A stretch of DNA of 43,828 nucleotides from Basidiobolus meristosporus CBS 931.73 (lineage: Eukaryota > Fungi > Basidiobolomycota): contig MCFE01000702.1 of the NCBI GenBank assembly GCA_002104905.1, forward strand, positions 1 to 43,828, read 5' to 3'. The notes under the pieces are model-generated. The model worked only from the letters and a program-made list of their open reading frames with translations. It made no database searches and was not told the origin of the DNA. The first letter of the stretch is position 1, and each line of letters begins with the position of its first letter. Made by a program: the position numbers and the translations under genes. Below, in pieces: positions 4,480 through 39,030 of this stretch.

Positions 4480-6100
4480 CTCATACATCTCTGGCTCAAC
4501 TGCTACAAGTGCTCACGCCAAGGTTACTGGCCCAGGCTATGCGGGATTGCTAAGTTAGTGGCTCATAAAAGTGTAGGCCAACCTAAGATAATGGACTAGA
4601 ATAGTAGGCATACCCTAACCCTACTTTGGCAAAAGGTTGGAGCATTGCTCGTTCTTGTGGTCGAAGTTGCATTCATATCGGACCTCAAGCTTCTAATGGA
4701 CCAAGGTGTGCTTTTCATATAACCCCTTCTGATCAAGTTAAACCGTAGAACAATTATCTGGTAAACTCTATGGATGAAGTGATGAGCAAAGCATTACCTC
4801 AGAATTGCATGTGAATACCCAAGTCAAATCTTCAATTTTTTGGCGATGATTGATGTGAACACTAGTAACCGGATTTTGTGTTTTGCATACAAAGTAAAAG
4901 AGAGTGAATATAACTCAGGCCGTATGGCCCTTATTTTCATGCAGTGTACTTTTCTTATGACACTTACATGGAACTAAGCCATCTCTACTCAGGAATACGT
5001 ATACAGCATCAGTTTATACTTGGTCTACTAGTTGCCACCTAACAAACCAACGCATTTTGATAAACCCCACTATTGTAGAACTGGTGAAATAATTGATGTT
5101 GTTACAAACACTGTGCTAATACATAACTTCGAACATACTTGATTACAACTTTACACAACGTTTACGAAGCATTACCAAGTGCAAAAAGCCAGACAGGTGT
5201 TATGAATTATACCAAAGAAATATAGTAACAATAATCAAGTCAAAGAATTTGTTTGATATCAAATGATGGTAAGCTGACTTCAAGCTTAAATAGCTTGTAG
5301 AATACTTAATACTTGAAGAACTCAAAGGCACAAAGCACTAGTAAATGTTGTACAAATGATATTATTAAAAATCCTCAACTGAATATCACAAAGTCAGAAT
5401 TGGTTTTCCATCAATACTATAGCTACTTTTATGCATTTATAATGCCTTTGGTCAATGTCTTGGATATAAGTTAACTTGGATGATCGTTTTTTTTGAATTT
5501 CACAGAGTACTGAGCTTGAGAAAGCAAAAAGAACGTACTACTAGTCTCTGAAGCATGCACATGATCTAGAGCTTATAAGTTGCACTTATTTGTGGATATA
5601 ACTGAATTTGTCATAAGTTTTGTATTTGCACCTAAGTATATATTGTAAAAGGTTTGAAGATGATGGAAGCTTAGGAACATTCCTCTTTGTCAGGATATAC
5701 TTATAACATCAAAGTTCGTTGAGATATCCAAAACCCATAAACCCAGAACACATGTTTTTGGGATTCTCCTAAACAACCTCTACATGTATGTTCAGCCCAG
5801 ACTTTGGTGAGTATATTAACACTTTTATATTCAATGAATTATCAAGTGAAGACCATGTAATATACTGGTCCTCTCAATCACTTCCCATTCCTCCAAAACT
5901 CTCACAACAGATACAAATTAGATATATATATGATCAGAGCTTTGTAACAGCACTGACACGAGTGTTTTGACCTAAACCACATTACTTCCCTACTTACAAT
6001 ATTCAATAGTTTAATCACGTATAAACTCCTACTTGTACTGCCAGTACACAGTGCCCAACCCTATTGTTTAGTGAGGCTTAAGCGTTGCTTCTCACTAAGA
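4480..6100 (+). mobile_element. Highly degenerate retroelement-like relic (AT-rich, CpG-poor)
   Basis: 4501-4542 reads CYKCSRQGYWPRLC, a CX2CX4HX4C zinc knuckle with H replaced by Y. The rest has no long ORF and few CG dinucleotides. Boundaries approximate. Confidence 0.35.
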
Positions 6101-25699: not shown

Positions 25700-25890
25700 T
25701 TGTGAATGAAAGATGTAACTATTGCTGGTTGTACGTGGCCCTCTTTTGAGGGCACCAATCTTCACGTGTTGCCATACTCAAATGGTTCTGGAATATTGTG
25801 GCTTAGAGAAATTACGTTGGTATTGCATCTTTGTTTGGTTTTATTGGACTAAGATAAACCAACTAACAGAGTAGGTTGAACAATGCAGAT

Positions 25891-26833
25891 TTAGTAGAAG
25901 TAACCCAAGATCTTGCCACCAGTGTGCTTTCTACGGGCTTCTTCGTGGTCCATGATACCGGCGGAGGTGGTGAACACAAGGTATCCGAACTGACGAGAGG
26001 GCAACAATTGGTTGATCCAGTTCTCGACATCAGTGAGCTTCACGTTGAAGCGAGGAGAGATGACTCCGCACTTGTTCAAACGTCCGTTCAATTGGATGAC
26101 AATCTTGCCAGAACGGTGGTCATCGATCTCTTCGAACTCTCCGATGTAGCCTGTAATGAAACAATCACAACTTTCAGTTAGTCACCGCTTCACTCGATTC
26201 GTCCCACTCTACTTCGACCATCGCCAGCAACAGCTGGCCATAGTCGGCAAGGGTTAGTCGATATCTCCACCGTCGCGCAAGCAGCTCGAACCCGACAATG
26301 TTGCAGGCTCAGCAGTAGCAGTGTGGTAGAAGGCAGATGGTTTGTCACGATGATATAAACAGTATGCAAGGTGAATACCCCTTGACCACGCCGTGTAAGT
26401 ACACGTAGTTAATGTACCGAAGCATTAAAAGACAAAGTAGGTAGGAAGATACTACGCTCATCCAGTTATAGACTTCGGATCGGCCCACTAGTGGCCATAA
26501 TCGATTGCGCCCCGCACTTCCATCTGCCATTCTGCCACTCCTCAACTGGCCCACACTGTTGCCCTTGCTGTTGTTGCTGCCGCTGCTCTTGCTTCGGGTG
26601 ACAAAGAACTCTCCCCTCACCATACCGTAGATACATACAAACACACACACACACACACAAGTGCGCATGCGTATGCGGGCTTAATGGATTCGGTACTTAC
26701 CATGCTTTTGCATAACCGACAAGAACTTCACAATGACCTTGGAGGAGGGTCTGATGAGAACTTGACGCTTTCCACGCTTCTCAGCGTTGTTGATGTTCTT
26801 AAGGCAATCGTTCAAGACAGAGATTCTGACCAT
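25891..26833 (-). CDS. RPS22: 40S ribosomal protein S22/S15a (uS8), copy A
   Basis: Exon 26833-26701 ([45 protein letters not shown]), 550-nt intron 26700-26151, exon 26150-25891 ([34 protein letters not shown]...GGKILGYFY, stop TAA). Confidence 0.98.
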
Positions 26834-27149
26834 GTTTCCGGTTGTTCACAAGTGATATGAAGTGGCTACATGACAAAAGTTCAGTTAAGTCCGTGTTGCT
26901 TTCACTGTAGTCCCTGACGCATCGTCAGTTTCCAAACTCTTCAAGCCAACTAGAGTCTCGCCTCCTTGCCACACTCGCCGCAAGCCCACGCCCACCTCGA
27001 GGTCTGCTTCGATGTTGCAGACAGAAGGTCAGCGCGGGGAGGCAACTCGTGAGCAAGCAGTGCGATTCATAGATGTCTCGAACCGCTTTCGCAGTTCTTT
27101 GAATGCCCAGCATGAGTGTTGCCTGAATGAACAGGCAAGTCATGAGGCA
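25892..27149. repeat. About 1.26-kb near-identical direct repeat (partner 28765-30019) covering RPS22 CDS, coding intron and 3' half of the UTR intron
   Basis: Direct comparison shows scattered SNPs and a net 3-nt indel. Identity starts at the stop codon and fades after CATGAGGCA at 27149/30019. Confidence 0.95.
26340..26480 (-). ncRNA. snR44: Intronic box H/ACA snoRNA, snR44-like, copy A
   Basis: Hairpin 1: stem CCGAAG/CUUCGG, pocket CUAUAACU (26471-26464) and UUUAAUG (26429-26423), H box ACAUUA (26415-26410) 14 nt from the pocket. Hairpin 2: pocket CUUACA (26399-26394) and UUUA (26359-26356), ACA box (26345-26343) 14 nt from the pocket. The pockets complement conserved 18S CAUUAAA-U-C-AGUUAU and 25S UAAA-U-A-UGUAAG. 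Confidence 0.85.
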
Positions 27150-27465
27150 AGTAAGCAGCGGCTCATTGGTAATAACCAAATCTTCATAGAAATCATCACC
27201 ATTTCTAATGAAGGGCCTTAACACGATTCTTGATGCACAGTGATTGTTTGATGGTCGGTCAAACGAGCCATCAGACACTTTCTGATGCTCAAGAATGGCT
27301 GACTATGGGATCAAAACCTCTGGGTAGAGGTTGACTTGACTTGCCTGCACGATTATTCCCCTCATGATCTTCCGCATACTATGAATACACTCTCATCTGA
27401 AGCGCAAGGCTTCAGATAGTGAGCTTTGGAGATGGATGGAAGGATTCATGAGCGTGATTACTAAC
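26866..27465 (-). other. Predicted 600-nt 5'-UTR intron of RPS22 copy A
   Basis: Donor ACAG|GTTAGT at 27465, kept in both copies amid unrelated sequence. Branch-like ACTTAAC, pyrimidine tract and TGTAG acceptor at 26866, 32 nt before the ATG. A pyrimidine-rich short first exon lies upstream. Confidence 0.7.
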
Positions 27466-27696
27466 CTGTTGCGATGGCGTTGCCGAGGAAGAAGGAACCG
27501 AAACCCAATCCAATGGAAGTATTTATATCCGGTATGCATGATGAACCAACTCCACCCAATTTCTTGATTCCCCCATCAAAGATGCCACCAATCAAAAGTA
27601 CAGAAGCCTTGCCATGCACTACTACGACCAGGTGGTGTAAAAATCGACATAACCATTATGAAGTGCCTGTTACAACTCGAGAAATCCTCGAGAACT

Positions 27697-28536
27697 TTAA
27701 TTGGTGATCTTACGGTTCGCCACAGCCTCGGCGGCAGCTTTGAGTGCGATGTCACGCTTGCTGCCCGCCTCGGTTTGGCCCGCGATGAATTTGGAAATGC
27801 TTTTCAACTCCTCAGTGTCGAGGAGATTGGGATGAACGTAAAAGGTGGGTTTGGGTGGGTTCGAGGATTGGTTATACAGTGGTAGCTTTTCCTTCTTGAC
27901 TCCCCAAGAGGTGAAGGGTCGGTTGGAGGGCTCCAAATCACCCACTTTCACCTGGCTGATGCGTACCCCACCGAGGAATTTGTAGGTGTATAACTTGAGC
28001 TCGGTATCGGGTGTGATTTCCGAGAAGGTTGTTTTCAGTGGATTGTTGTCACCTAGTACATCTTGGGTATAGTGTTCACCGTTATGTTCCTCGGATATGG
28101 CGATTTTGGTCACATAAGGGCTAAGACACCAATGGACCAACCCAGTTGAGACGGTACTGGTAGCGATAGCTAGATAAACACACAAGAGCTCTGTTAGCGA
28201 AGGTGCTCACTTTCACATTACTTAAAGGCCATTCTAACCTGCACCCACGAGGATACTTCTCATGCCGAACGAAATGGGCGCCTCAATCAAGAAAACGGCC
28301 GGACATACGGCGAAAGTAAGTGCCAAGGAGGAGACCGAAAAGATTTTGAGGTATTTTGCTGTGTTCGCAAGTGGCCCAATATACAACGCACGCTCCTTTT
28401 CGGCAGGTTGACTTCCGGTAGTGTACCAGTGCTGGTGGGATACCAAGGATAGCGTCTTTAGCGCAGAACCTCTTGCGGTCTGAACAGCCGTGAACGTACG
28501 GAAGCCATTCCGGCAAAGAGCTTGGCGAACGAACAT
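27697..28536 (-). CDS. TMEM70-family mitochondrial membrane protein, 2 exons
   Basis: ATG 28536 with an R/S-rich mitochondrial presequence; LYIGPLANTAKYLKIFSVSSL; two hydrophobic helices split by intron 28238-28170; STGLVHWCLSPYV, RPFTSW and FYVH motifs. Confidence 0.75.
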
Positions 28537-28763
28537 CGTATACAAGTAATAAGCTCAGTTCTACTACTATGCCTTTAAGGGCAAACATTGGCAATCAAAA
28601 ATTTTCGATCATGTGATGACTCCCAATATCCCACCACCTCAAAATTCCTTGGAGCAACAGCAACAAACTAGCATTGTTTTTCAAATTTGTATTTATTATA
28701 AGATATTGCATGTATATTTTTACAGCTCCAAAGAACTTGTCTTGGAGTAGATATTAAGGCAAC

Positions 28764-29703
28764 CTAGTAGAAGTAACCCAGGATCTTGCCACCAGTGTGC
28801 TTTCTACGGGCTTCTTCGTGGTCCATGATACCGGCGGAGGTGGTGAACACAAGGTATCCGAACTGACGAGAGGGCAACAATTGGTTGATCCAGTTCTCGA
28901 CATCAGTGAGCTTCACGTTGAAGCGAGGAGAGATGACTCCGCACTTGTTCAAACGTCCGTTCAATTGGATGACAATCTTGCCAGAACGGTGGTCATCGAT
29001 CTCTTCGAACTCTCCGATGTAGCCTGTAATGAAACAATCACAACTTTCAGTTAGTCACCGCTTCACTCGATTCGTCCCACTCTACTTCGACCATCGCCAG
29101 CAACAGCTGGCCATAGTCGGCAAGGGTTAGTCGATGTCTCCACCGTCGCGCAAGCAGCTCGAACCCGGCAATGTTGCAGGCTCAGCAGTAGCAGTGTGGT
29201 AGAAGGCAGATGGTTTGTCACGATGATATAAACAGCATGCAAGGTGAATACCCCTTGACCACGCCGTGTAAGTACACGTAGTTAATGTACCGAAGCATTA
29301 AAAGACAAAGTAGGTAGGAAGATACTACGCTCATCCAGTTATAGACTTCGGATCGGCCCACTAGTGGCCATAATCGATTGCGCCCCGCACTTCCATCTGC
29401 CATTCTGCCACTCCTCAACTGGCCCACACTGTTGCCCTTGCTGTTGTTGCTGCCGCTGCTCTTGCTTCTGGGTGACAAAGAACTCTCCCCTCACCATACC
29501 GTAGATACATACAAACACAAACACACACAAGTGCGCATGGGTATGCGGGCTTAATGGATTCGGTACTTACCATGCTTTTGCATAACCGACAAGAACTTCA
29601 CAATGACCTTGGAGGAGGGTCTGATGAGAACTTGACGCTTTCCACGCTTCTCAGCGTTGTTGATGTTCTTAAGGCAATCGTTCAAGACAGAGATTCTGAC
29701 CAT
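28764..29703 (-). CDS. RPS22: 40S ribosomal protein S22/S15a (uS8), copy B
   Basis: Exon 29703-29571, 547-nt intron 29570-29024, exon 29023-28764 (stop TAG). Protein identical to copy A where compared. Confidence 0.98.
29213..29353 (-). ncRNA. snR44: Intronic box H/ACA snoRNA, snR44-like, copy B
   Basis: Same boxes and pockets as copy A (offset 2873). The one substitution seen (29236) turns a C-A mismatch in the hairpin-2 upper stem into a C-G pair. Confidence 0.85.
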
Positions 29704-29735
29704 GTTTCCGGTTGTTCACAAGTGATATGAAGTGG

Positions 29736-30268
29736 CTACATGACAAAAGTTCAGTTAAGTCCGTGTTGCTTTCACTGTAGTCCCTGACGCATCGTCAGTT
29801 TCCAAACTCTTCAAGCCAACTAGAGTCTCGCCTCCTTGTCACACTCGCCGCAAGCCCACGCCCACCTCGAGATCTGCTTTGATGTTGCAGCCAGAAGGTC
29901 AGCGCGGGGAGGCAACTTGTGAGCAAGCAGTGCGATTCATAGATGTCTCGAACCGCTTTCGCAGTTCTTTGAATGCCCGGCATGAGTGTTGCCCGATTAA
30001 TAGGACAATTCATGAGGCATATAACCGGATGAAAAGCAAGCTTTCAATTGGCGGTCGGCAATCACAGTTACGGAGCCCAACCTCAGTCAGAGATCCACCG
30101 AATAGGGTTTCTTCGGACCTTGGTGAGCGCCAACCGGCCAACCGGATTCTACGATGTTGAATTTGATGTTCCTTCGGGGACACTCATGCGGGCTTTCATT
30201 CTATGAACTCTGTTCCGTGGACTGGCTCTCGGATTGGGTTGTAAGGGCCCATGAAATTGATTACTAAC
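29736..30268 (-). other. Predicted 533-nt 5'-UTR intron of RPS22 copy B
   Basis: Donor ACAG|GTTAGT at 30268 and acceptor TGTAG at 29736, equivalent to copy A. Confidence 0.7.
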
Positions 30269-30554
30269 CTGTGGAGAAGGTACCGCTGGTGTAAGAGATG
30301 GTAAACCAACGTTTGATCGCCCCTTATATGGGGGAAAATTTTATTCACCCCTGAAGAATGGGAATCTCAAGGGGCACCGATTTACAGGGTTATGGAATTT
30401 GGTATATCCATCCAATCAAATCTCGGAAGCGAAATGCATTTATGGGATTATAAATAAATATGGGAACGCGAAATTAGTTGGTGTGTCAGCAATCATGTCA
30501 ACAGAGGAAAATGGCCTGAGGTTACAAAATTCTGGAGCATTTGTATGCATGCAT

Positions 30555-32087
30555 TTAGTAGGTGAATCGGAAATCAAGTCTATCACTTCCGACATCCTTC
30601 GTGGTATCGAGATACTCCTGTCTGGCTTCCTCCGACATCGCATTCCATCGTTGCTCTCTTTTACGATTGAGGAAGATGTAGTGGTATCTTTGCGCAATGA
30701 AGAGTATGATGGTAAAGAATGTCAGCCCGATATTGATCCAGTTCCCCCGATGGAATCGGGGCTTATCGTCGTCCCGGTAGATTTGACTGCTGAGGAGCCC
30801 ATTGATGTTCACGGACATGATATACATTGCCAACGCCATTGAGCGCTTCCCCATGGGTGCTACGTTTTCGGTGAGCCAAGCTGCATTGATAGGATGCCAT
30901 GATGGCCAGCCTACAGTGAACACGATCACTGCGTACAAGGACCACCGGTTTGTGTTATCGGGTAAGAGCTCGAGGCAGAATAGTCCAACCAGAAACCAGA
31001 CAGTTCCGGCAACTCCATGCCATGCCCGGTCTTTCACACGATCACTGTTTCGAGTGAGTGCCAACATGACCAAGAACTTCAGAAAGTGCGCCGGGATGGT
31101 AAGCAAGTTGCTGATCACTGTGCTGAAGCCTAGACTCTTGATCACTAGTGGCATGTAGGATGTGACTGGAACTGGGGCTGTCAATCCAAAGAAACCGATG
31201 AGGAGATGCCCCCAAATGCGTGTATCTTTCAATGCAGCTAGCAGCTCAGTGTTCTTGACTCCTTCTCTGCGGCCAATGGCTTTGCTAGGATCATCTCGGA
31301 TCAGGCGGGTTACCAAGATGCTGACCTCCCTGTCGTCAAACCAGCCGTTTTTTCCTCTCAAGAGGCCCTTGGTTCTGGCTGGGCCCTCCGGGAGATAGAA
31401 GAAGGTGACGATTGCGACAAGCACAGTGCCAATGCCATCAATCAGGAACAGCCATTGCCATCCTTTGAGACCGGCAACGCCACGTAACCTCAGGACTCCG
31501 AATGAAATCAGTCCAGAAGATGCGTCGGCCAGGGCCAATACTCCCCAGAACCAGGACAAACGAGTAGCTAGTTCCTCTTTGGTATAGTATGTGGTCATGT
31601 AGAGAATGATGCCAGGAACGTAACCAGCCTCGGTCAGGCCAAGGAAAAGACGCGAGAGAAGGAAGGAGGTTTTGTCATGCATGAATGTCTGAGCCCAGCT
31701 CACGGTGCCCCACAGAAACATCAGGAAGGGGATCCATCTCTCGGCACCAACCTTGCGAATCACCATGTTCGAAGGGATCTCCAGACTTACGAAGGACAGA
31801 ACAAAGATGATGGTGCCGAGGTTCACCACGTCAAGGGTGATCCCAAGGTCATCAATGAAGTTGTCAGTTAGCGCGTTCGACACATTCCCCCGATCCAATT
31901 GCAAGAAGAAGAACATAAGACCTATCCAAGTCATTACGCGAATATCTATTCTGCGTACCAATCTCTTCTCTTCCTCCTCTTCCCAGGTGATTTTGTGGTC
32001 ATACCCTTCTACATGACTGAGTCGTTCATGTTCCACCGATATGATATCAGTGATGCTGTCGCGAGGATTCTTTTTCTCCACAGGCAT
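30555..32087 (-). CDS. MFS permease, anion:cation symporter (Dal5/Tna1-like) family, copy A, 510 aa, intronless
   Basis: EEKRLVRRIDIRV, QLDRGNVSNA, SLEIPSNM, SRLFLGLTEAGYVPG, YYTKEELATRLSWFW, GLKGWQWLFLIDG; about 12 hydrophobic segments. Confidence 0.93.
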   Translation of the reverse strand: MPVEKKNPRDSITDIISVEHERLSHVEGYDHKITWEEEEEKRLVRRIDIRVMTWIGLMFFFLQLDRGNVSNALTDNFIDDLGITLDVVNLGTIIFVLSFVSLEIPSNMVIRKVGAERWIPFLMFLWGTVSWAQTFMHDKTSFLLSRLFLGLTEAGYVPGIILYMTTYYTKEELATRLSWFWGVLALADASSGLISFGVLRLRGVAGLKGWQWLFLIDGIGTVLVAIVTFFYLPEGPARTKGLLRGKNGWFDDREVSILVTRLIRDDPSKAIGRREGVKNTELLAALKDTRIWGHLLIGFFGLTAPVPVTSYMPLVIKSLGFSTVISNLLTIPAHFLKFLVMLALTRNSDRVKDRAWHGVAGTVWFLVGLFCLELLPDNTNRWSLYAVIVFTVGWPSWHPINAAWLTENVAPMGKRSMALAMYIMSVNINGLLSSQIYRDDDKPRFHRGNWINIGLTFFTIILFIAQRYHYIFLNRKREQRWNAMSEEARQEYLDTTKDVGSDRLDFRFTY

Positions 32088-32250: not shown

Positions 32251-33986
32251 GTACGTATAGTCAAACGCAATGAGGATGCAGAGATACTTGTTTCAACAAG
32301 AAGTGCAATATGCCCCTCATGTTGCAACATTCGATGAGCGTGTCCTGGGTCCGATGGTTGGCTGCTATCTTCCGATCAAGAGAGTCTGCCATCTCGCTAG
32401 ATGATCTCTAGACCAACCATCGCTTCTGTCAACTATTGCATCATCCCATTCGACTATGGACCGGAGAGGCGTGGTGATTTAATGGGATCGCAATTATGCC
32501 ATTAAGCTGGTATGTGATGTTTTTCCGCTTATCCGTCGAAACCTGGATCCCACATCAAGCGGAATAAGATCACGCAGCGTACACAAAAGTGGCCAGTCGT
32601 TGAATGTTTCCATATGAGTTAATATAGTTCTTCACAACTTCAAGGTTGTTACTGGCTACCAAGATTACACACAGTGACTCAATTCCTATTTGCACACCAG
32701 ATGGAGTGCTATTCTGCTAGCTCACGCTCACTGTTGTCACATCCTGATCTTGCCTGATATGTCTGCCATTGTTCTTTACTGGCTCTGAAGATTGCTGGCA
32801 GCTTGCTTCGCTCTTGGTGCACAGGTTGTATCTGTAAAATATTGTAGGAAGTAGACTATCTCACAGTTGTCAGCTTCAATGTATAGCACATCTTATTCGT
32901 GATTCCCTCATTGGCTTCGCGAATATGCCAATAGCGCTTATAAGGGGTTTACCAGGCGCCAAATCTTATCGATGCTGGGTTGGAAACTGCTGAGCTTCTG
33001 AGGGAGTCCGTTGCCCTAGTTTCTTATCATAATGATATTAATGGCTAGATATGAGTTCTACAGCGGATCCTTAGATTTGCTTCGAAACACTCTCCACCTC
33101 ATTAAGATATACCCAAGTGGCCTTATCCATATAACTTGCAATGATTTGGCGCTCGTTGGATTTCATTTTTATATACACATTGAAATGGATATTTAGATAT
33201 GCGTATATCAAGAGTTCACTGAACCATCTATTAAGTAGTTGCTACGTATATAGCATACCGATCAGAATGTTGAGATAATGAACGATTATGATGCTATCCA
33301 TTAAATGGATGCCGTATTTTAACTATATACCTGGTGCGAATCTGCAGGTGGATTTCTGCATTTGGAATATTGTACCAGAGCAATCCTTACCGAAATCTAC
33401 GTCTACAATGCGTTAGCTGATCGGTCCCATTCTCTCTCGATGTAGTAGCAGTGCTCCGTAGACTACACGCAGGGCTGCCATCCACCGTATGCATTGGTTC
33501 AACAACCTCTACACAGTTCCAATTTGCTTACATATCCTTAGCCCTGGTTCCTGGAAAGTTGGAATCAGAGTTTGAGAACTTTCCAAGCCACAAAACTGGC
33601 CATTCCATTCTGAAGAGAGATCATCATACACTACACAATGCGTTCCGGACCAGCTTCATTGGATTCTTGACATATACACGCTGTATGACTGTATGAAGGT
33701 GCTGCGGAAAGATTGGAGGTGGGAAATATCAATGATGTTTCTAGCAACTCTTGGTATCTAGTACATACTCTACCGGAATGATGTGGCACTCGAAATTTAT
33801 ATAATTTAACTTGCACCGAAATCTCAATTTAGTCTTCGAATATATATGTTAAAATACGTTCTGTGCAGAGGTGCTTATTATCAGGGTGGGTGATAGGTTC
33901 AAGCGCTAACTGATGTAGTGAATGCGATGGCAGCAAGGGAAGATGGGCCGAAGTTACAAAATTCTGGAGCATTTGTATGGATGCAT

Positions 33987-35519
33987 TTAGTAGGTGAATC
34001 GAAAATCAAGTCTATCACTTCCGACATCCTTCGTGGTATCGAGATACTCCTGTCTGGCTTCCTCCGACATCGCATTCCATCGTTGCTCTCTTTTACGATT
34101 GAGGAAGATGTAGTGGTATCTTTGCGCAATGAAGAGTATGATGGTGAAGAACGTCAGCCCGATATTGATCCAGTTCCCCCGATGGAATCGGGGCTTATCG
34201 TCGTCCCGGTAGATTTGACTGCTTACGAGCCCATTGATGTTCACGGACATGATATACATTGCCAACGCCATTGAGCGCTTACCCATGGGTGCTACGTTTT
34301 CGGTGAGCCAAGCTGCATTGATAGGATGCCAGAATGGCCAGCCTACAGTGAACACGATCACTGCGTACAAGGACCACCGGTTTGTGTTATCGGGTAAGAG
34401 CTCGAGGCAGAATAGTCCAACCAGAAACCAGACAGTTCCGGCAACTCCATGCCATGCCCGGTCTTTCACACGATCACTGTTTCGAGTGAGTGCCAACATG
34501 GCCAAGAACTTCAGAAAGTGCGCCGGGATGGTAAGCAAGTTGCTGATCACTGTGCTGAAGCCTAGACTCTTGATCACTAGTGGCATGTAGGATGTGACTG
34601 GATGTGGAGCCATCAATCCGAAGAAACCGATAAGGAGATGCCCCCAAATGCGTGTATCTTTCAAAGCAGCTAGCAGCTCAGTGTTCTTGACTCCTTCTCT
34701 GCGGCCAATGGCTTTGCTAGGATCATCTCGGATCAGGCGGGTTACCAAGATGCTGACCTCCCTGTCGTCAAACCAGCCGTTTTTTCCTCTCAAGAGGCCC
34801 TTGGTTCTGGCTGGGCCCTCCGGGAGATAGAAGAAGGTGACGATTGCGACAAGCACAGTGCCAATGCCATCAATCAGGAACAGCCATTGCCACCCTTTGA
34901 GACCGGCAACGCCACGTAACCTCAGGACTCCGAATGAAATCAGTCCAGAAGATGCGTCGGCCAGGGCCAATACTCCCCAGAACCAGGACAAACGAGTAGC
35001 TAGTTCCTCTTTGGTATAGTATGTGGTCATGTAGAGAATGATGCCAGGAACGTAACCAGCCTCGGTCAGGCCAAGGAAAAGACGCGAGAGAAGGAAGGAG
35101 GTTTTGTCATGCATGAATGTCTGAGCCCAGCTCACGGTGCCCCACAGAAACATCAGGAAGGGGATCCATCTCTCGGCACCAACCTTGCGAATCACCATGT
35201 TCGAAGGGATCTCCAGACTTACGAAGGACAGAACAAAGATGATGGTGCCGAGGTTCACCACATCAAGGGTGATCCCAAGGTCTTCAACGAAGTTATCGGT
35301 CATCGCGTTCGACACATTCCCCCGATCCAATTGCAAGAAGAAGAACATAAGACCTATCCAAGTCATTATTCGGATATCCACTTTTCGAACCAGCCTCTTC
35401 TCTTCTTCTTCGGTCCAGCTAACTTCTGGGTCGTAACCATCAACATGATTGAACCTTTCATACTCTACAGTGAGGATGTCAGTGTTACCCTCGTGTGGAA
35501 TCTTTTTCTCTAGCGTCAT
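33987..35519 (-). CDS. MFS permease, Dal5/Tna1-like, copy B, 510 aa, intronless
   Basis: The track ORF extends to 35657, but ATG 35519 (MTLEKK) aligns with the copy A start, gives the same length and lies downstream of the shared TATA box. Confidence 0.93.
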   Translation of the reverse strand: MTLEKKIPHEGNTDILTVEYERFNHVDGYDPEVSWTEEEEKRLVRKVDIRIMTWIGLMFFFLQLDRGNVSNAMTDNFVEDLGITLDVVNLGTIIFVLSFVSLEIPSNMVIRKVGAERWIPFLMFLWGTVSWAQTFMHDKTSFLLSRLFLGLTEAGYVPGIILYMTTYYTKEELATRLSWFWGVLALADASSGLISFGVLRLRGVAGLKGWQWLFLIDGIGTVLVAIVTFFYLPEGPARTKGLLRGKNGWFDDREVSILVTRLIRDDPSKAIGRREGVKNTELLAALKDTRIWGHLLIGFFGLMAPHPVTSYMPLVIKSLGFSTVISNLLTIPAHFLKFLAMLALTRNSDRVKDRAWHGVAGTVWFLVGLFCLELLPDNTNRWSLYAVIVFTVGWPFWHPINAAWLTENVAPMGKRSMALAMYIMSVNINGLVSSQIYRDDDKPRFHRGNWINIGLTFFTIILFIAQRYHYIFLNRKREQRWNAMSEEARQEYLDTTKDVGSDRLDFRFTY

Positions 35520-37219: not shown

Positions 37220-38199
37220 TGTTGTAGAAATCTTGAATATACTGGAAGTAATTAGGAGATCAAGTCTACTATTATGCTTTAGTTGGCACTTCATTCAATG
37301 TTATGGTGGTATTTATACTTTAGCCCTACCCTAAGATCCCATCAAAAGGTTATCACAAGATTCAAATCTCATGAACAAGTGGCATTGCTGCCATTAGGAC
37401 CATACGTAAACCATTTGAAAAACATTGTGCCTTGGATTTCACAAATGGCTTGGTCAAAATTTTCATCACAACAGCCCCCAAGTTGCTTTTGATTGGTTCT
37501 CTGCCATTTCTCTCACTTTCTGATCCCAGTCACTGAGTTGATTCCTACATATGTGTACATTGATGCACTATTGCCACTCTTTCTCACTCCATACATGCAG
37601 ACTCAACCAGTGCTCTTACTCTTCATGCATACAAATTGGTTTGTGTCTGCTGATTCTTCAGTTGTAACTCAAACATAGACTGTACCTACCAATATAGTGT
37701 TGTAAGAGTCTTGGAGATATTGGAAGTGATTGGGAGGACAAGTAGATCATGTGTTTTTCACTTAATGATTTATTGTATGTAAAAGTAGTATTTATACTTT
37801 TACATGGTCTTGGCAAAACAAACATGTAGAATAGGTTAAGGAAGGTCCCAAGTGTTGTAAAAATTGAATTCCACCTAAATATTCACCTAGCTTAGTCACT
37901 TAATTCAGTACCTTCACATCCCAGAGAACACCAACCAAATTCCCTGCCAGGATTTACTTAGAATATTTTCACAAAAATACCAGGTACCCAGAACATGAAA
38001 ATTCTCAAAGTTGTCCATACAGCCCCAATCTTTGCACACATGCTCTTGGGACCTTCCTTAACCTATTCTACATGTTTTTTATGCCAAGACCATGTAAAAG
38101 TACAACTACTACTTTTACATTCAATAAATCATTAAGTGAAAACCACATAATCTACTTGTTCTCCCAATCACTTCCAATATCTCCAAGACTCTTACAACA
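37220..38199. mobile_element. Cluster of copia-type LTR copies: older (-) copy about 37220-37473, partial (-) copy 37698-37852, (+) LTR 37853-38199
   Basis: TGTTG...CAACA termini at 37853/38199. All three share the 3' segment (AAAGTA(T/C)AA...ACTTGnTCTCCnAATnACTTCCAnTAT...ACAACAC), and two keep TATAAATA. The 5' end of the older copy is uncertain. Confidence 0.6.
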
Positions 38200-38201
38200 C
38201 T

Positions 38202-39030
38202 AACTACCAAGTGTGGAAGGTGAAGATGAAGATGCTGCTACAAGAAAGAGGCCATTGGAATATTGTCATGGGAGAAGAATGCCCTCCTAAAGATGTGGTT
38301 GCAGAAGCCTTAAAGTACCAGAAGAAAGAACTAAGTGCCTTTAACTGCATTTGCCTTAATGTACAGGACAAATTGCTAATTCAATGCTCAAGAACAAAAA
38401 TGGCAAAGAATGCCTGGAAGGCATTAGAAGGCACCAACCAGTCATGTTCAGCTGCTAAGAAAATGTATCTAAGACAAAAATTCTTAACTACAAAGATGCT
38501 GCCAGGAGAAGAAATGAAAAATCCAATTAACAGAATTACCCTGCTGGTAGATGAAATGGAATCTGTGGGCATACCAACCACTGATAAGGATGTGATAGTT
38601 ACTATCCTGAATAGCCTGACAGAGAAGTTTCAGGGCCTTGTATCAGCCCTAGAGTCCAGAACTGAAGCTTTCATCTTAAATTATGTATATGGAAGGCTCC
38701 TGGATGAAGAATTAAGAAAATCAAGCACCAATAAGAAGGAAGAAGAAAATGCATTAATAACCAATAATAACCAACAAAGAAGGTAACCAAGACCTTACAA
38801 AGGCAACAGCAGCCTGTTTTGCAACTACTGAAAAAAGAAAGGACACACATCAGTCTGGTATCTCAAAAAGAGAGATAATCAGCAAAAGAAGCCTGAATGT
38901 GGAAATGCTGCAACAACTGAAGATAGACTATTCAAATATGCACTAAATATGACCACAAACAAGGATTCTCAGATGTGTCATATTGACTCTGGAGCATCTC
39001 AACACTTTACACACAAAAAGTACTTTTACC
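38202..39030 (+). mobile_element. Ty1/copia gag-protease fragment (dead)
   Basis: NYQVWKVKMKMLLQERGHW gag start, a UBN2-like region (KMYLRQKFLTTKM, VTILNSLTEKF), a broken zinc knuckle CNY*KKKGH, and protease HIDSGASQHF. Truncated after the protease. Confidence 0.88.

Follow-up and report, generated by a model that had tools for sequence, protein, structure and literature searches.

An intron-encoded candidate orthologue of the H/ACA small nucleolar RNA snR44 in the duplicated RPS22 gene of Basidiobolus meristosporus

The window analysed here, a stretch of 43,828 nucleotides (43.8 kb) that makes up positions 1 to 43,828 of contig MCFE01000702.1 from the fungus Basidiobolus meristosporus CBS 931.73, carries on its minus strand a uS8/RPS22 gene whose single intron holds a two-hairpin RNA. 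We conclude, with a probability that we would place at about 0.87, that this RNA is orthologous to the box H/ACA small nucleolar RNA (snoRNA) snR44 and occurs twice (copies A and B) through a tandem duplication of its host gene. In yeast, the pseudouridines (Psi) 18S Psi106 and 25S Psi1056 are assigned to snR44 (PMC5699541), and its gene, SNR44, is housed in the second RPS22B intron, which interrupts the coding region (PMC5291244). The sequence-only reading from which this work started had proposed an snR44-type RNA in the same host gene as in yeast, and this is upheld by positional and sequence orthology, by the location in a coding intron of RPS22, and by two covariance models, the Rfam model of snR44 and a second one, R1, built from other fungi.

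The elements of the RNA run in the order hairpin-H-hairpin-ACA that defines the box H/ACA class. A lower stem, an open pocket and an upper stem-loop are followed by the H box, a second hairpin and an ACA box with three further bases, which places the ACA 3 nt from the inferred 3′ end. All of these parts were located on the minus strand, and the earlier description of a complete two-hairpin H/ACA RNA in a coding intron, with its boxes and both pockets, therefore holds. The distance from pocket to box is exactly 14 nt for both pockets in 11 of 11 orthologous sequences, the two window copies included (14–16 nt being the range for the class); the exact 14-nt distances claimed from the sequence are borne out both by this anatomy and by constrained folds. 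An unconstrained fold also recovers both hairpins.

The host was identified as a uS8/RPS22 gene by its Pfam Ribosomal_S8 domain and by a search with exon 2 alone, which is 100% identical to the B. meristosporus 40S ribosomal protein S22-A; the two exons were translated separately. Between the 5′ splice site and the snoRNA lie 220 nt of intron, and between the snoRNA and the 3′ splice site 189 nt (Table 1).

Table 1. Positions in the window of the two snoRNA copies, the functional elements of copy A and the host gene
Feature	Position	Strand	Remarks
H/ACA snoRNA copy A	26340..26481	-	~141 nt; 5′ end near 26481-26479; 3-nt tail to 26340
H/ACA snoRNA copy B	29213..29354	-	copy A coordinates +2873
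Lower stem 1, 6 bp	CCGAAG 26478-26473 with CUUCGG 26422-26417	-	sequence
Pocket 1, 5′ strand CUAUAACU	26464..26471	-	invariant in five Basidiobolus lineages
Pocket 1, 3′ strand UUUAAUG	26423..26429	-	starts 14 nt before H box
H box ACAUUA (ANANNA)	26410..26415	-	ACAUCA in the X5 and X6 relatives, still ANANNA
Pocket 2, 5′ strand CUUACA	26394..26399	-	shared with Geosiphon, Rhizophagus and the snR44 consensus of Rfam
Pocket 2, 3′ strand UUUA	26356..26359	-	starts 14 nt before ACA
ACA box	26343..26345	-	invariant in all orthologues
Sole copy A/B difference in the snoRNA	26363 (A) vs 29236 (G)	-	C.A -> C-G, upper stem of hairpin 2
RPS22/uS8 exon 1, copy A	26701..26833	-	133 nt; ATG 26833-26831
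RPS22/uS8 exon 2, copy A	25891..26150	-	stop TAA 25893-25891
Host intron, copy A	26151..26700	-	550 nt; GTAAGT...ACAG; after coding-sequence nt 133, phase 1
Whole host gene and intron, second copy	28765..30019	-	98.25% identity to 25892-27149

Both pockets are complementary to the ribosomal RNA (rRNA) sites of yeast snR44. In pocket 1, the 5′ strand CUAUAACU pairs with 18S AGUUAUAG (nt 108–115, in the yeast numbering used throughout) and the 3′ strand UUUAAUG pairs with CAUUAAA (nt 99–105), giving 8 + 7 perfect pairs to CAUUAAA-UC-AGUUAUAG and leaving U106-C107 unpaired. In pocket 2, CUUACA pairs with 25S UGUAAG (nt 1058–1063) and UUUA with UAAA (nt 1052–1055), giving 6 + 4 perfect pairs to UAAA-UA-UGUAAG and leaving U1056-A1057 unpaired. 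The target strings and their numbering were checked on one metagenome scan, which supplied 118 environmental eukaryotic 18S contigs (L018-L135). Among the C-type (yeast-like) contigs that include the 18S start, which read CAUUAAA-UC-AGUUAUNG, the C of CAUUAAA most often falls at nt 99, so that the unpaired U is number 106; in the contig with a complete 5′ 28S (L131) the bracketed U of AAA[U]AUGUAAG is nt 1056. With the complementarity to conserved fungal rRNA strings and the numbering of U106 and U1056 both checked, the earlier statement that the two pockets match the snR44 sites can be retained.

The 18S target is variable at one position within the paired region. In the context CAUUAAAUCAGUUAUNGUUUAUUUGAU, where N is 18S position 114, N is C in 60 of the 118 contigs, A in 57 and G in 1, and the perfect pocket-1 string occurs in 57. 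Both guide variants of the snoRNA family accordingly have frequent natural targets (60 C and 57 A). Opposite position 114 the guides of Basidiobolus, Geosiphon and Phycomyces carry U, those of Lineolata and the yeast consensus G, that of Neoconidiobolus C and that of Rhizophagus A, and we predict that the guide tracks the local 18S variant, in keeping with an idea already voiced in the sequence-only reading. None of the 118 environmental 18S contigs is assignable to Basidiobolus and the 43.8-kb window holds no ribosomal DNA (rDNA); for B. meristosporus itself the guides predict the strings CAUUAAAUCAGUUAUAG in 18S and UAAAUAUGUAAG in 28S. The A-type contigs end before the 28S site with one exception, L030, a probably non-fungal contig that has AAAUGGGUAAG there.

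Comparison with other fungi, whose RPS22 loci were fetched through a search with exon 2, shows that the position of this intron and its content are widely shared. The same intron, after coding-sequence nt 133 in phase 1, holds an H/ACA RNA of the same design in seven loci and six other genera: in B. ranarum, Neoconidiobolus thromboides, Geosiphon pyriformis, Rhizophagus clarus, two paralogues of Phycomyces blakesleeanus, and Lineolata rhizophorae, a dothideomycete and thus an ascomycete. Introns that carry the RNA are 202–550 nt long, compared with 80–112 nt for those that do not. The same intron is present with no such RNA in both copies of Calcarisporiella and in the chytrid Phlyctochytrium, and RPS22 is intronless in Piptocephalis, in the blastoclad Blastocladiella and in extra paralogues of both Basidiobolus species.

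The two hairpins have fared differently in this set. In one Phycomyces paralogue (L010:1750-1813), in Neoconidiobolus (L005:1745-1818) and in Lineolata (L016:1800-1872) the 3′ pocket has other sequences, with the 5′ hairpin keeping its 18S guide; in these three the 3′ hairpin seems either to have acquired a new target or to have decayed. This bears on a rival account of the Basidiobolus RNA, namely that it is a real H/ACA snoRNA in which only the 5′ hairpin is active, on 18S U106, the match of the 3′ pocket to 25S U1056 being vestigial or the pocket having another target. Such an RNA would fit a pocket 2 that offers just 6 + 4 bp, a hairpin that is evidently labile in evolution, and the mismatched upper stem of hairpin 2 in copy A. 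We nevertheless consider it improbable, as CUUACA, UUUA and the 14-nt spacing do not vary among the five Basidiobolus lineages, Geosiphon and Rhizophagus and agree with the snR44 consensus of Rfam, and the yeast family uses the same ten base pairs at a site that has been assigned to snR44 by experiment (PMC5699541).

Covariance models give independent positions to the RNA and its relatives. R1, which was built from the Geosiphon and Rhizophagus RNAs only, finds both window copies on the minus strand (copy B, 29216-29352, 45.3 bits, E 1.7e-8; copy A, 26343-26479, 40 bits, E 3.2e-7) and no further match in the 43.8-kb window. It also finds the RNAs of Lineolata (44.9 bits, E 2.1e-8), B. ranarum (43 bits, E 6e-8), Phycomyces L010 (34.6 bits, E 6.4e-6), Phycomyces L012 (29.6 bits, E 0.00011) and Neoconidiobolus (21.9 bits, E 0.0074), with nothing convincing in the snoRNA-free loci. 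The Rfam model of snR44 (RF01262), run at relaxed thresholds, gives the sole snoRNA-family match in the intron (26351-26480, 15.5 bits), with an E of 1.7 over 4227 families, which corresponds to ~4e-4 for a single family, and its aligned blocks are precisely the guide elements. Its gathering score of 33 bits is passed by Lineolata (39.7 bits) and Rhizophagus (37.9 bits); Phycomyces L012 falls below it (23.3 bits), and for L010, Geosiphon and Neoconidiobolus this model reported no match.

The stems show the compensatory changes expected of H/ACA RNAs. In an alignment that was fitted to the model and includes one spurious row, 89.9% of cells are paired, against 38–50% when the partners are slid, and 23 of 31 pairs change on both sides; none of 500 shuffles reached the observed values. 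Lower stem 1 alone takes the forms CCGAAG/CUUCGG, UCGAAG/CUUCGA, CCAUAG/CUAUGG, CCGCAG/CUGCGG, CCAAAG/CUUUGG and UCGGGC/GCCCGA across the genera. Alignment by MAFFT followed by RNAalifold, tried with five and with nine sequences, placed the lower stems out of register and understated the covariation, and was replaced by constrained folds of each sequence and the model-based alignment.

Within Basidiobolus, conservation of the intron is confined to the RNA. The orthologous intron of B. ranarum (462 nt) cannot be aligned except for ~140 nt at ~93% identity, and these are the RNA. Contigs from public runs, compared over 25850-26900 (1,051 letters), add two Basidiobolus-like relatives: a 516-nt contig of X5 matches only 26343-26480 of the intron and has flanks unlike the window, and a contig of X6 matches 26317-26481 and exon 1, the remaining intron being replaced. 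Substitutions in these relatives fall in the apical loops, in the linker that follows the H box (one site of which shows all four bases), at an N position of the H box, and at stem sites where they are compatible with pairing (G.U to A-U, C-G to U.G). None of the four guide strands varies and the boxes are kept, apart from the change to ACAUCA at that N position. At the level of sequence, this pattern demonstrates purifying selection on the intron RNA.

A conserved, structured island in a ribosomal protein intron might alternatively be a cis-acting structure for the splicing or autoregulation of RPS22 and not a trans-acting guide. Introns of this kind, including the other intron of yeast RPS22B, do carry regulatory structures (PMC5291244; PMC8476143), and the mature RNA is here a deduction. 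A regulatory hairpin would have no need, however, of ANANNA and ACA boxes at fixed 14-nt distances, nor of two bipartite complementarities to both snR44 rRNA sites, yet these are invariant while the stems covary, and we regard this explanation as highly improbable.

Several observations weigh against the identification of the RNA as snR44. At gathering thresholds Rfam finds no match in the 43.8-kb window, and the 15.5 bits of the relaxed search stand below the 33 bits of the snR44 family; the check by Rfam cmsearch that had been suggested thus came out empty at the strict setting and in favour of snR44 at the relaxed one. Folding energy is no better than that of shuffles for copy A (z -0.10) and mildly lower for copy B (z -1.82). 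Energies at the level of shuffles are usual for H/ACA RNAs, with their large internal loops and pockets that are kept open. There is a C.A mismatch in upper stem 2 of copy A and a C.U mismatch in lower stem 1 of B. ranarum, and the pairing of pocket 2 totals 10 bp only. The target match rests on environmental and yeast-type rDNA, not on the 18S and 28S of Basidiobolus itself. Finally, the snoRNA contig of X5 includes flanking intron and is no proof of a mature stable RNA. The exons of X5 have a depth of 1e4-1e5, compared with 521 for the contig holding the snoRNA. None of the runs is recorded as RNA, and that X5 is RNA-like is a guess supported by depth alone. The runs are contigs, which do not reveal RNA ends and whose depth is not a basis for copy number or RNA level. 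We count the presence of the region in this RNA-like data set from a relative among the evidence in favour of the snoRNA.

If the RNA is indeed snR44, its biogenesis and action would run as follows. It would be transcribed within the RPS22 (uS8) pre-mRNA and its two hairpins bound by Cbf5/dyskerin-Nop10-Nhp2-Gar1; after splicing and lariat debranching, exonucleases would trim the intron to the protected RNA of ~141 nt. In the nucleolus, the pocket of the 5′ hairpin (8 + 7 bp) would clamp 18S around U106, and that of the 3′ hairpin (6 + 4 bp) would clamp 25S/28S around U1056. In each, the H or ACA box would stand 14 nt from the target U and its 3′ neighbour, which would be kept free of pairing, and Cbf5 would convert the U to pseudouridine. 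We infer the mature RNA, its processing and both modifications from sequence.

The two copies in the window differ at one position of the snoRNA, where copy A has A at 26363 and copy B has G at 29236. The substitution in copy B had been read as the repair of a stem mismatch, but the direction is the reverse: G occupies the position in every relative (B. ranarum and two Basidiobolus-like data sets), so that G is ancestral, the A of copy A is derived, and copy A has gained the mismatch. This raises the question of whether copy A is decaying, with copy B as the working gene. The C.A mismatch is found in copy A alone, hairpin 2 with its pocket constrained open folds at -13.6 kcal/mol in copy A and -17.2 in copy B, copy A misfolds, and R1 scores it 5 bits lower. 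Against this, the change leaves a single mismatch within a stem of 7 bp, beyond which another 5-bp helix follows, and the two copies share the same guides, boxes and host exons. The A-type base, moreover, is missing from the public-run contig of X1, which comes from the source organism and has the G-type base alone; this leaves the A without independent confirmation, and it could be an error of assembly or consensus. Degeneration of copy A seems to us unlikely.

The exon translations of the two RPS22 copies are identical, and the duplicated segment is 1.26 kb long. The 98% identity is confined to this segment, which comprises the gene and ~300 bp upstream; the sequences beyond it, 27150-28764 and 30020-31640, show no alignment other than a 44-nt match at 75% (27434-27477 with 30237-30280). 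This points either to the duplication of a short unit or to gene conversion that homogenizes the gene alone. Upstream of the snoRNA in the host intron lies a (GT)n microsatellite (26639-26662 and 29510-29529) that differs between the copies in length and by one point change, and that gave weak, spurious Rfam matches to microRNAs and small Cajal body-specific RNAs.

Intronless RPS22 paralogues are found in both species, on another contig in B. meristosporus (L002:2501-2893) and at two loci in B. ranarum (L003, L004), and are 95–96% identical to the query across its 85 residues. Copies with the intron and snoRNA thus stand beside intron-free copies in the Basidiobolus genome, an arrangement reminiscent of yeast RPS22B and RPS22A. 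One public run, X4, whose type is unstated, contains a form that skips the 550-nt intron exactly (26150-26699) and has ~91–97% identity to the window exons. It has two possible sources, spliced mRNA and an intronless paralogue in a relative, and because intronless DNA copies exist it is no proof of splicing.

The closest known counterpart is S. cerevisiae snR44, with which the Basidiobolus RNA shares both targets, the assignment of the 5′ hairpin to 18S and of the 3′ hairpin to 25S, the host gene family and the CUUACA/UUUA guide. At ~141 nt against 211 positions in the yeast model, the Basidiobolus RNA is smaller, owing to its shorter upper stems. It also departs from the RNAs of Dikarya in pocket 1, where its 5′ guide is CUAUAACU, with U opposite 18S position 114, compared with GAUAACU in Dikarya, and where its 3′ strand UUUAAUG pairs perfectly, compared with UUUAAGU.

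Within Dikarya, intronic snR44 is documented. In Candida species it lies in an intron of the RPS22A orthologue (PMC5033589); in Fusarium it is intronic and Dbr1-dependent (PMC9606315), and Kuraishia provides a further intronic case. In Neurospora crassa the listed snR44 homologue, Nc ACA1, is an intronic H/ACA RNA of 136 nt that directs 18S Psi105 from its H pocket and 26S Psi1037 from its ACA pocket (PMC2780460), and so resembles the Basidiobolus RNA both in being intronic and in its two sites. The snR44 RNAs of Neurospora, Fusarium and Candida are all from Dikarya; that of Basidiobolus extends the family and its host to Zoopagomycota, and the comparison loci extend snR44 and the RPS22 host to Mucoromycota, including Glomeromycotina. 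Vertebrate SNORA36 (ACA36), ACA50 and ACA62 are functional homologues for the 18S site, which is Psi105 in human and chicken 18S (PMC2653536; PMC2780460). They differ in having unrelated hosts, such as an intron of chicken CNOT1, and another second target, with no counterpart listed for the 25S site. The location of snR44 in an RPS22 intron is thus already known from Saccharomyces and Candida, and the Basidiobolus RNA is a well-supported addition to the family, not a new kind of element.

Similar associations have been described for other ribosome-related genes. The intron positions of RPL7, with snR59, and of NOG2, with snR191, are retained across most fungi because of the snoRNAs that they carry (PMC8476143); the RPS22/snR44 pair is unreported in that study. 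A survey of fungal snoRNAs traces only seven H/ACA families between Dikarya and early-branching fungi, and its main text makes no mention of snR44 (PMC5824354). Our literature search found no paper on Basidiobolus snoRNAs, and none that traces the RPS22/snR44 pair beyond Dikarya.

Parsimony makes the two-target design the ancestral state for Zoopagomycota, Mucoromycota and Dikarya, with several later alterations. We lean towards the view that the pairing of snR44 with the RPS22 intron, at its one fixed position, predates the split between these three groups, the 5′ hairpin remaining locked on 18S U106 with a base opposite position 114 that varies by lineage, and the 3′ hairpin having been re-targeted, or the 25S guide lost, in several lineages independently. 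The sequence-only reading had placed the linkage of host, snoRNA and targets in early fungal evolution; the evidence takes it back to the ancestor shared by Zoopagomycota, Mucoromycota and Dikarya but no deeper, as one chytrid intron lacks the RNA and one blastoclad gene lacks the intron. If our view is correct, RPS22/snR44 is among the oldest snoRNA-host linkages in fungi. The comparison shows that a snoRNA and its ribosomal protein host intron can persist together across the deepest splits among terrestrial fungi.

The evolutionary point, the age of the snR44-RPS22 linkage, is a modest one. Each securely traced family nevertheless helps to date the modification system, since the survey traced only seven H/ACA families that deep (PMC5824354). 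The analysis also provides a secure annotation for a snoRNA that had gone unannotated in both its copies, in a fungal lineage that has been little studied, and predicts two pseudouridines in the Basidiobolus ribosome. The orthologues collected here yield a shorter and broader snR44 model than the yeast-centred model of Rfam, which misses Basidiobolus.

Some further features were seen in the course of the comparison. Directly upstream of the Rhizophagus clarus RPS22 gene, a stretch on the minus strand (L017:1407-1497) has a weak Rfam match to the C/D family Afu_455 (23.1 bits, where the gathering score is 48). The window itself contains a second duplication, 30506-32078 and 33938-35510, at 95.4% identity, which covers an open reading frame for an MFS-type transporter (30555-32087, minus strand; Pfam MFS_1, E 5e-28). 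Two inverted 158-bp repeats of 95% identity lie at 37695-37852 and 38045-38202, their arms ~190 bp apart, and a third copy, 76–82% similar, is found 32 kb away at 5779-5909; this repeat may be a small transposable element.

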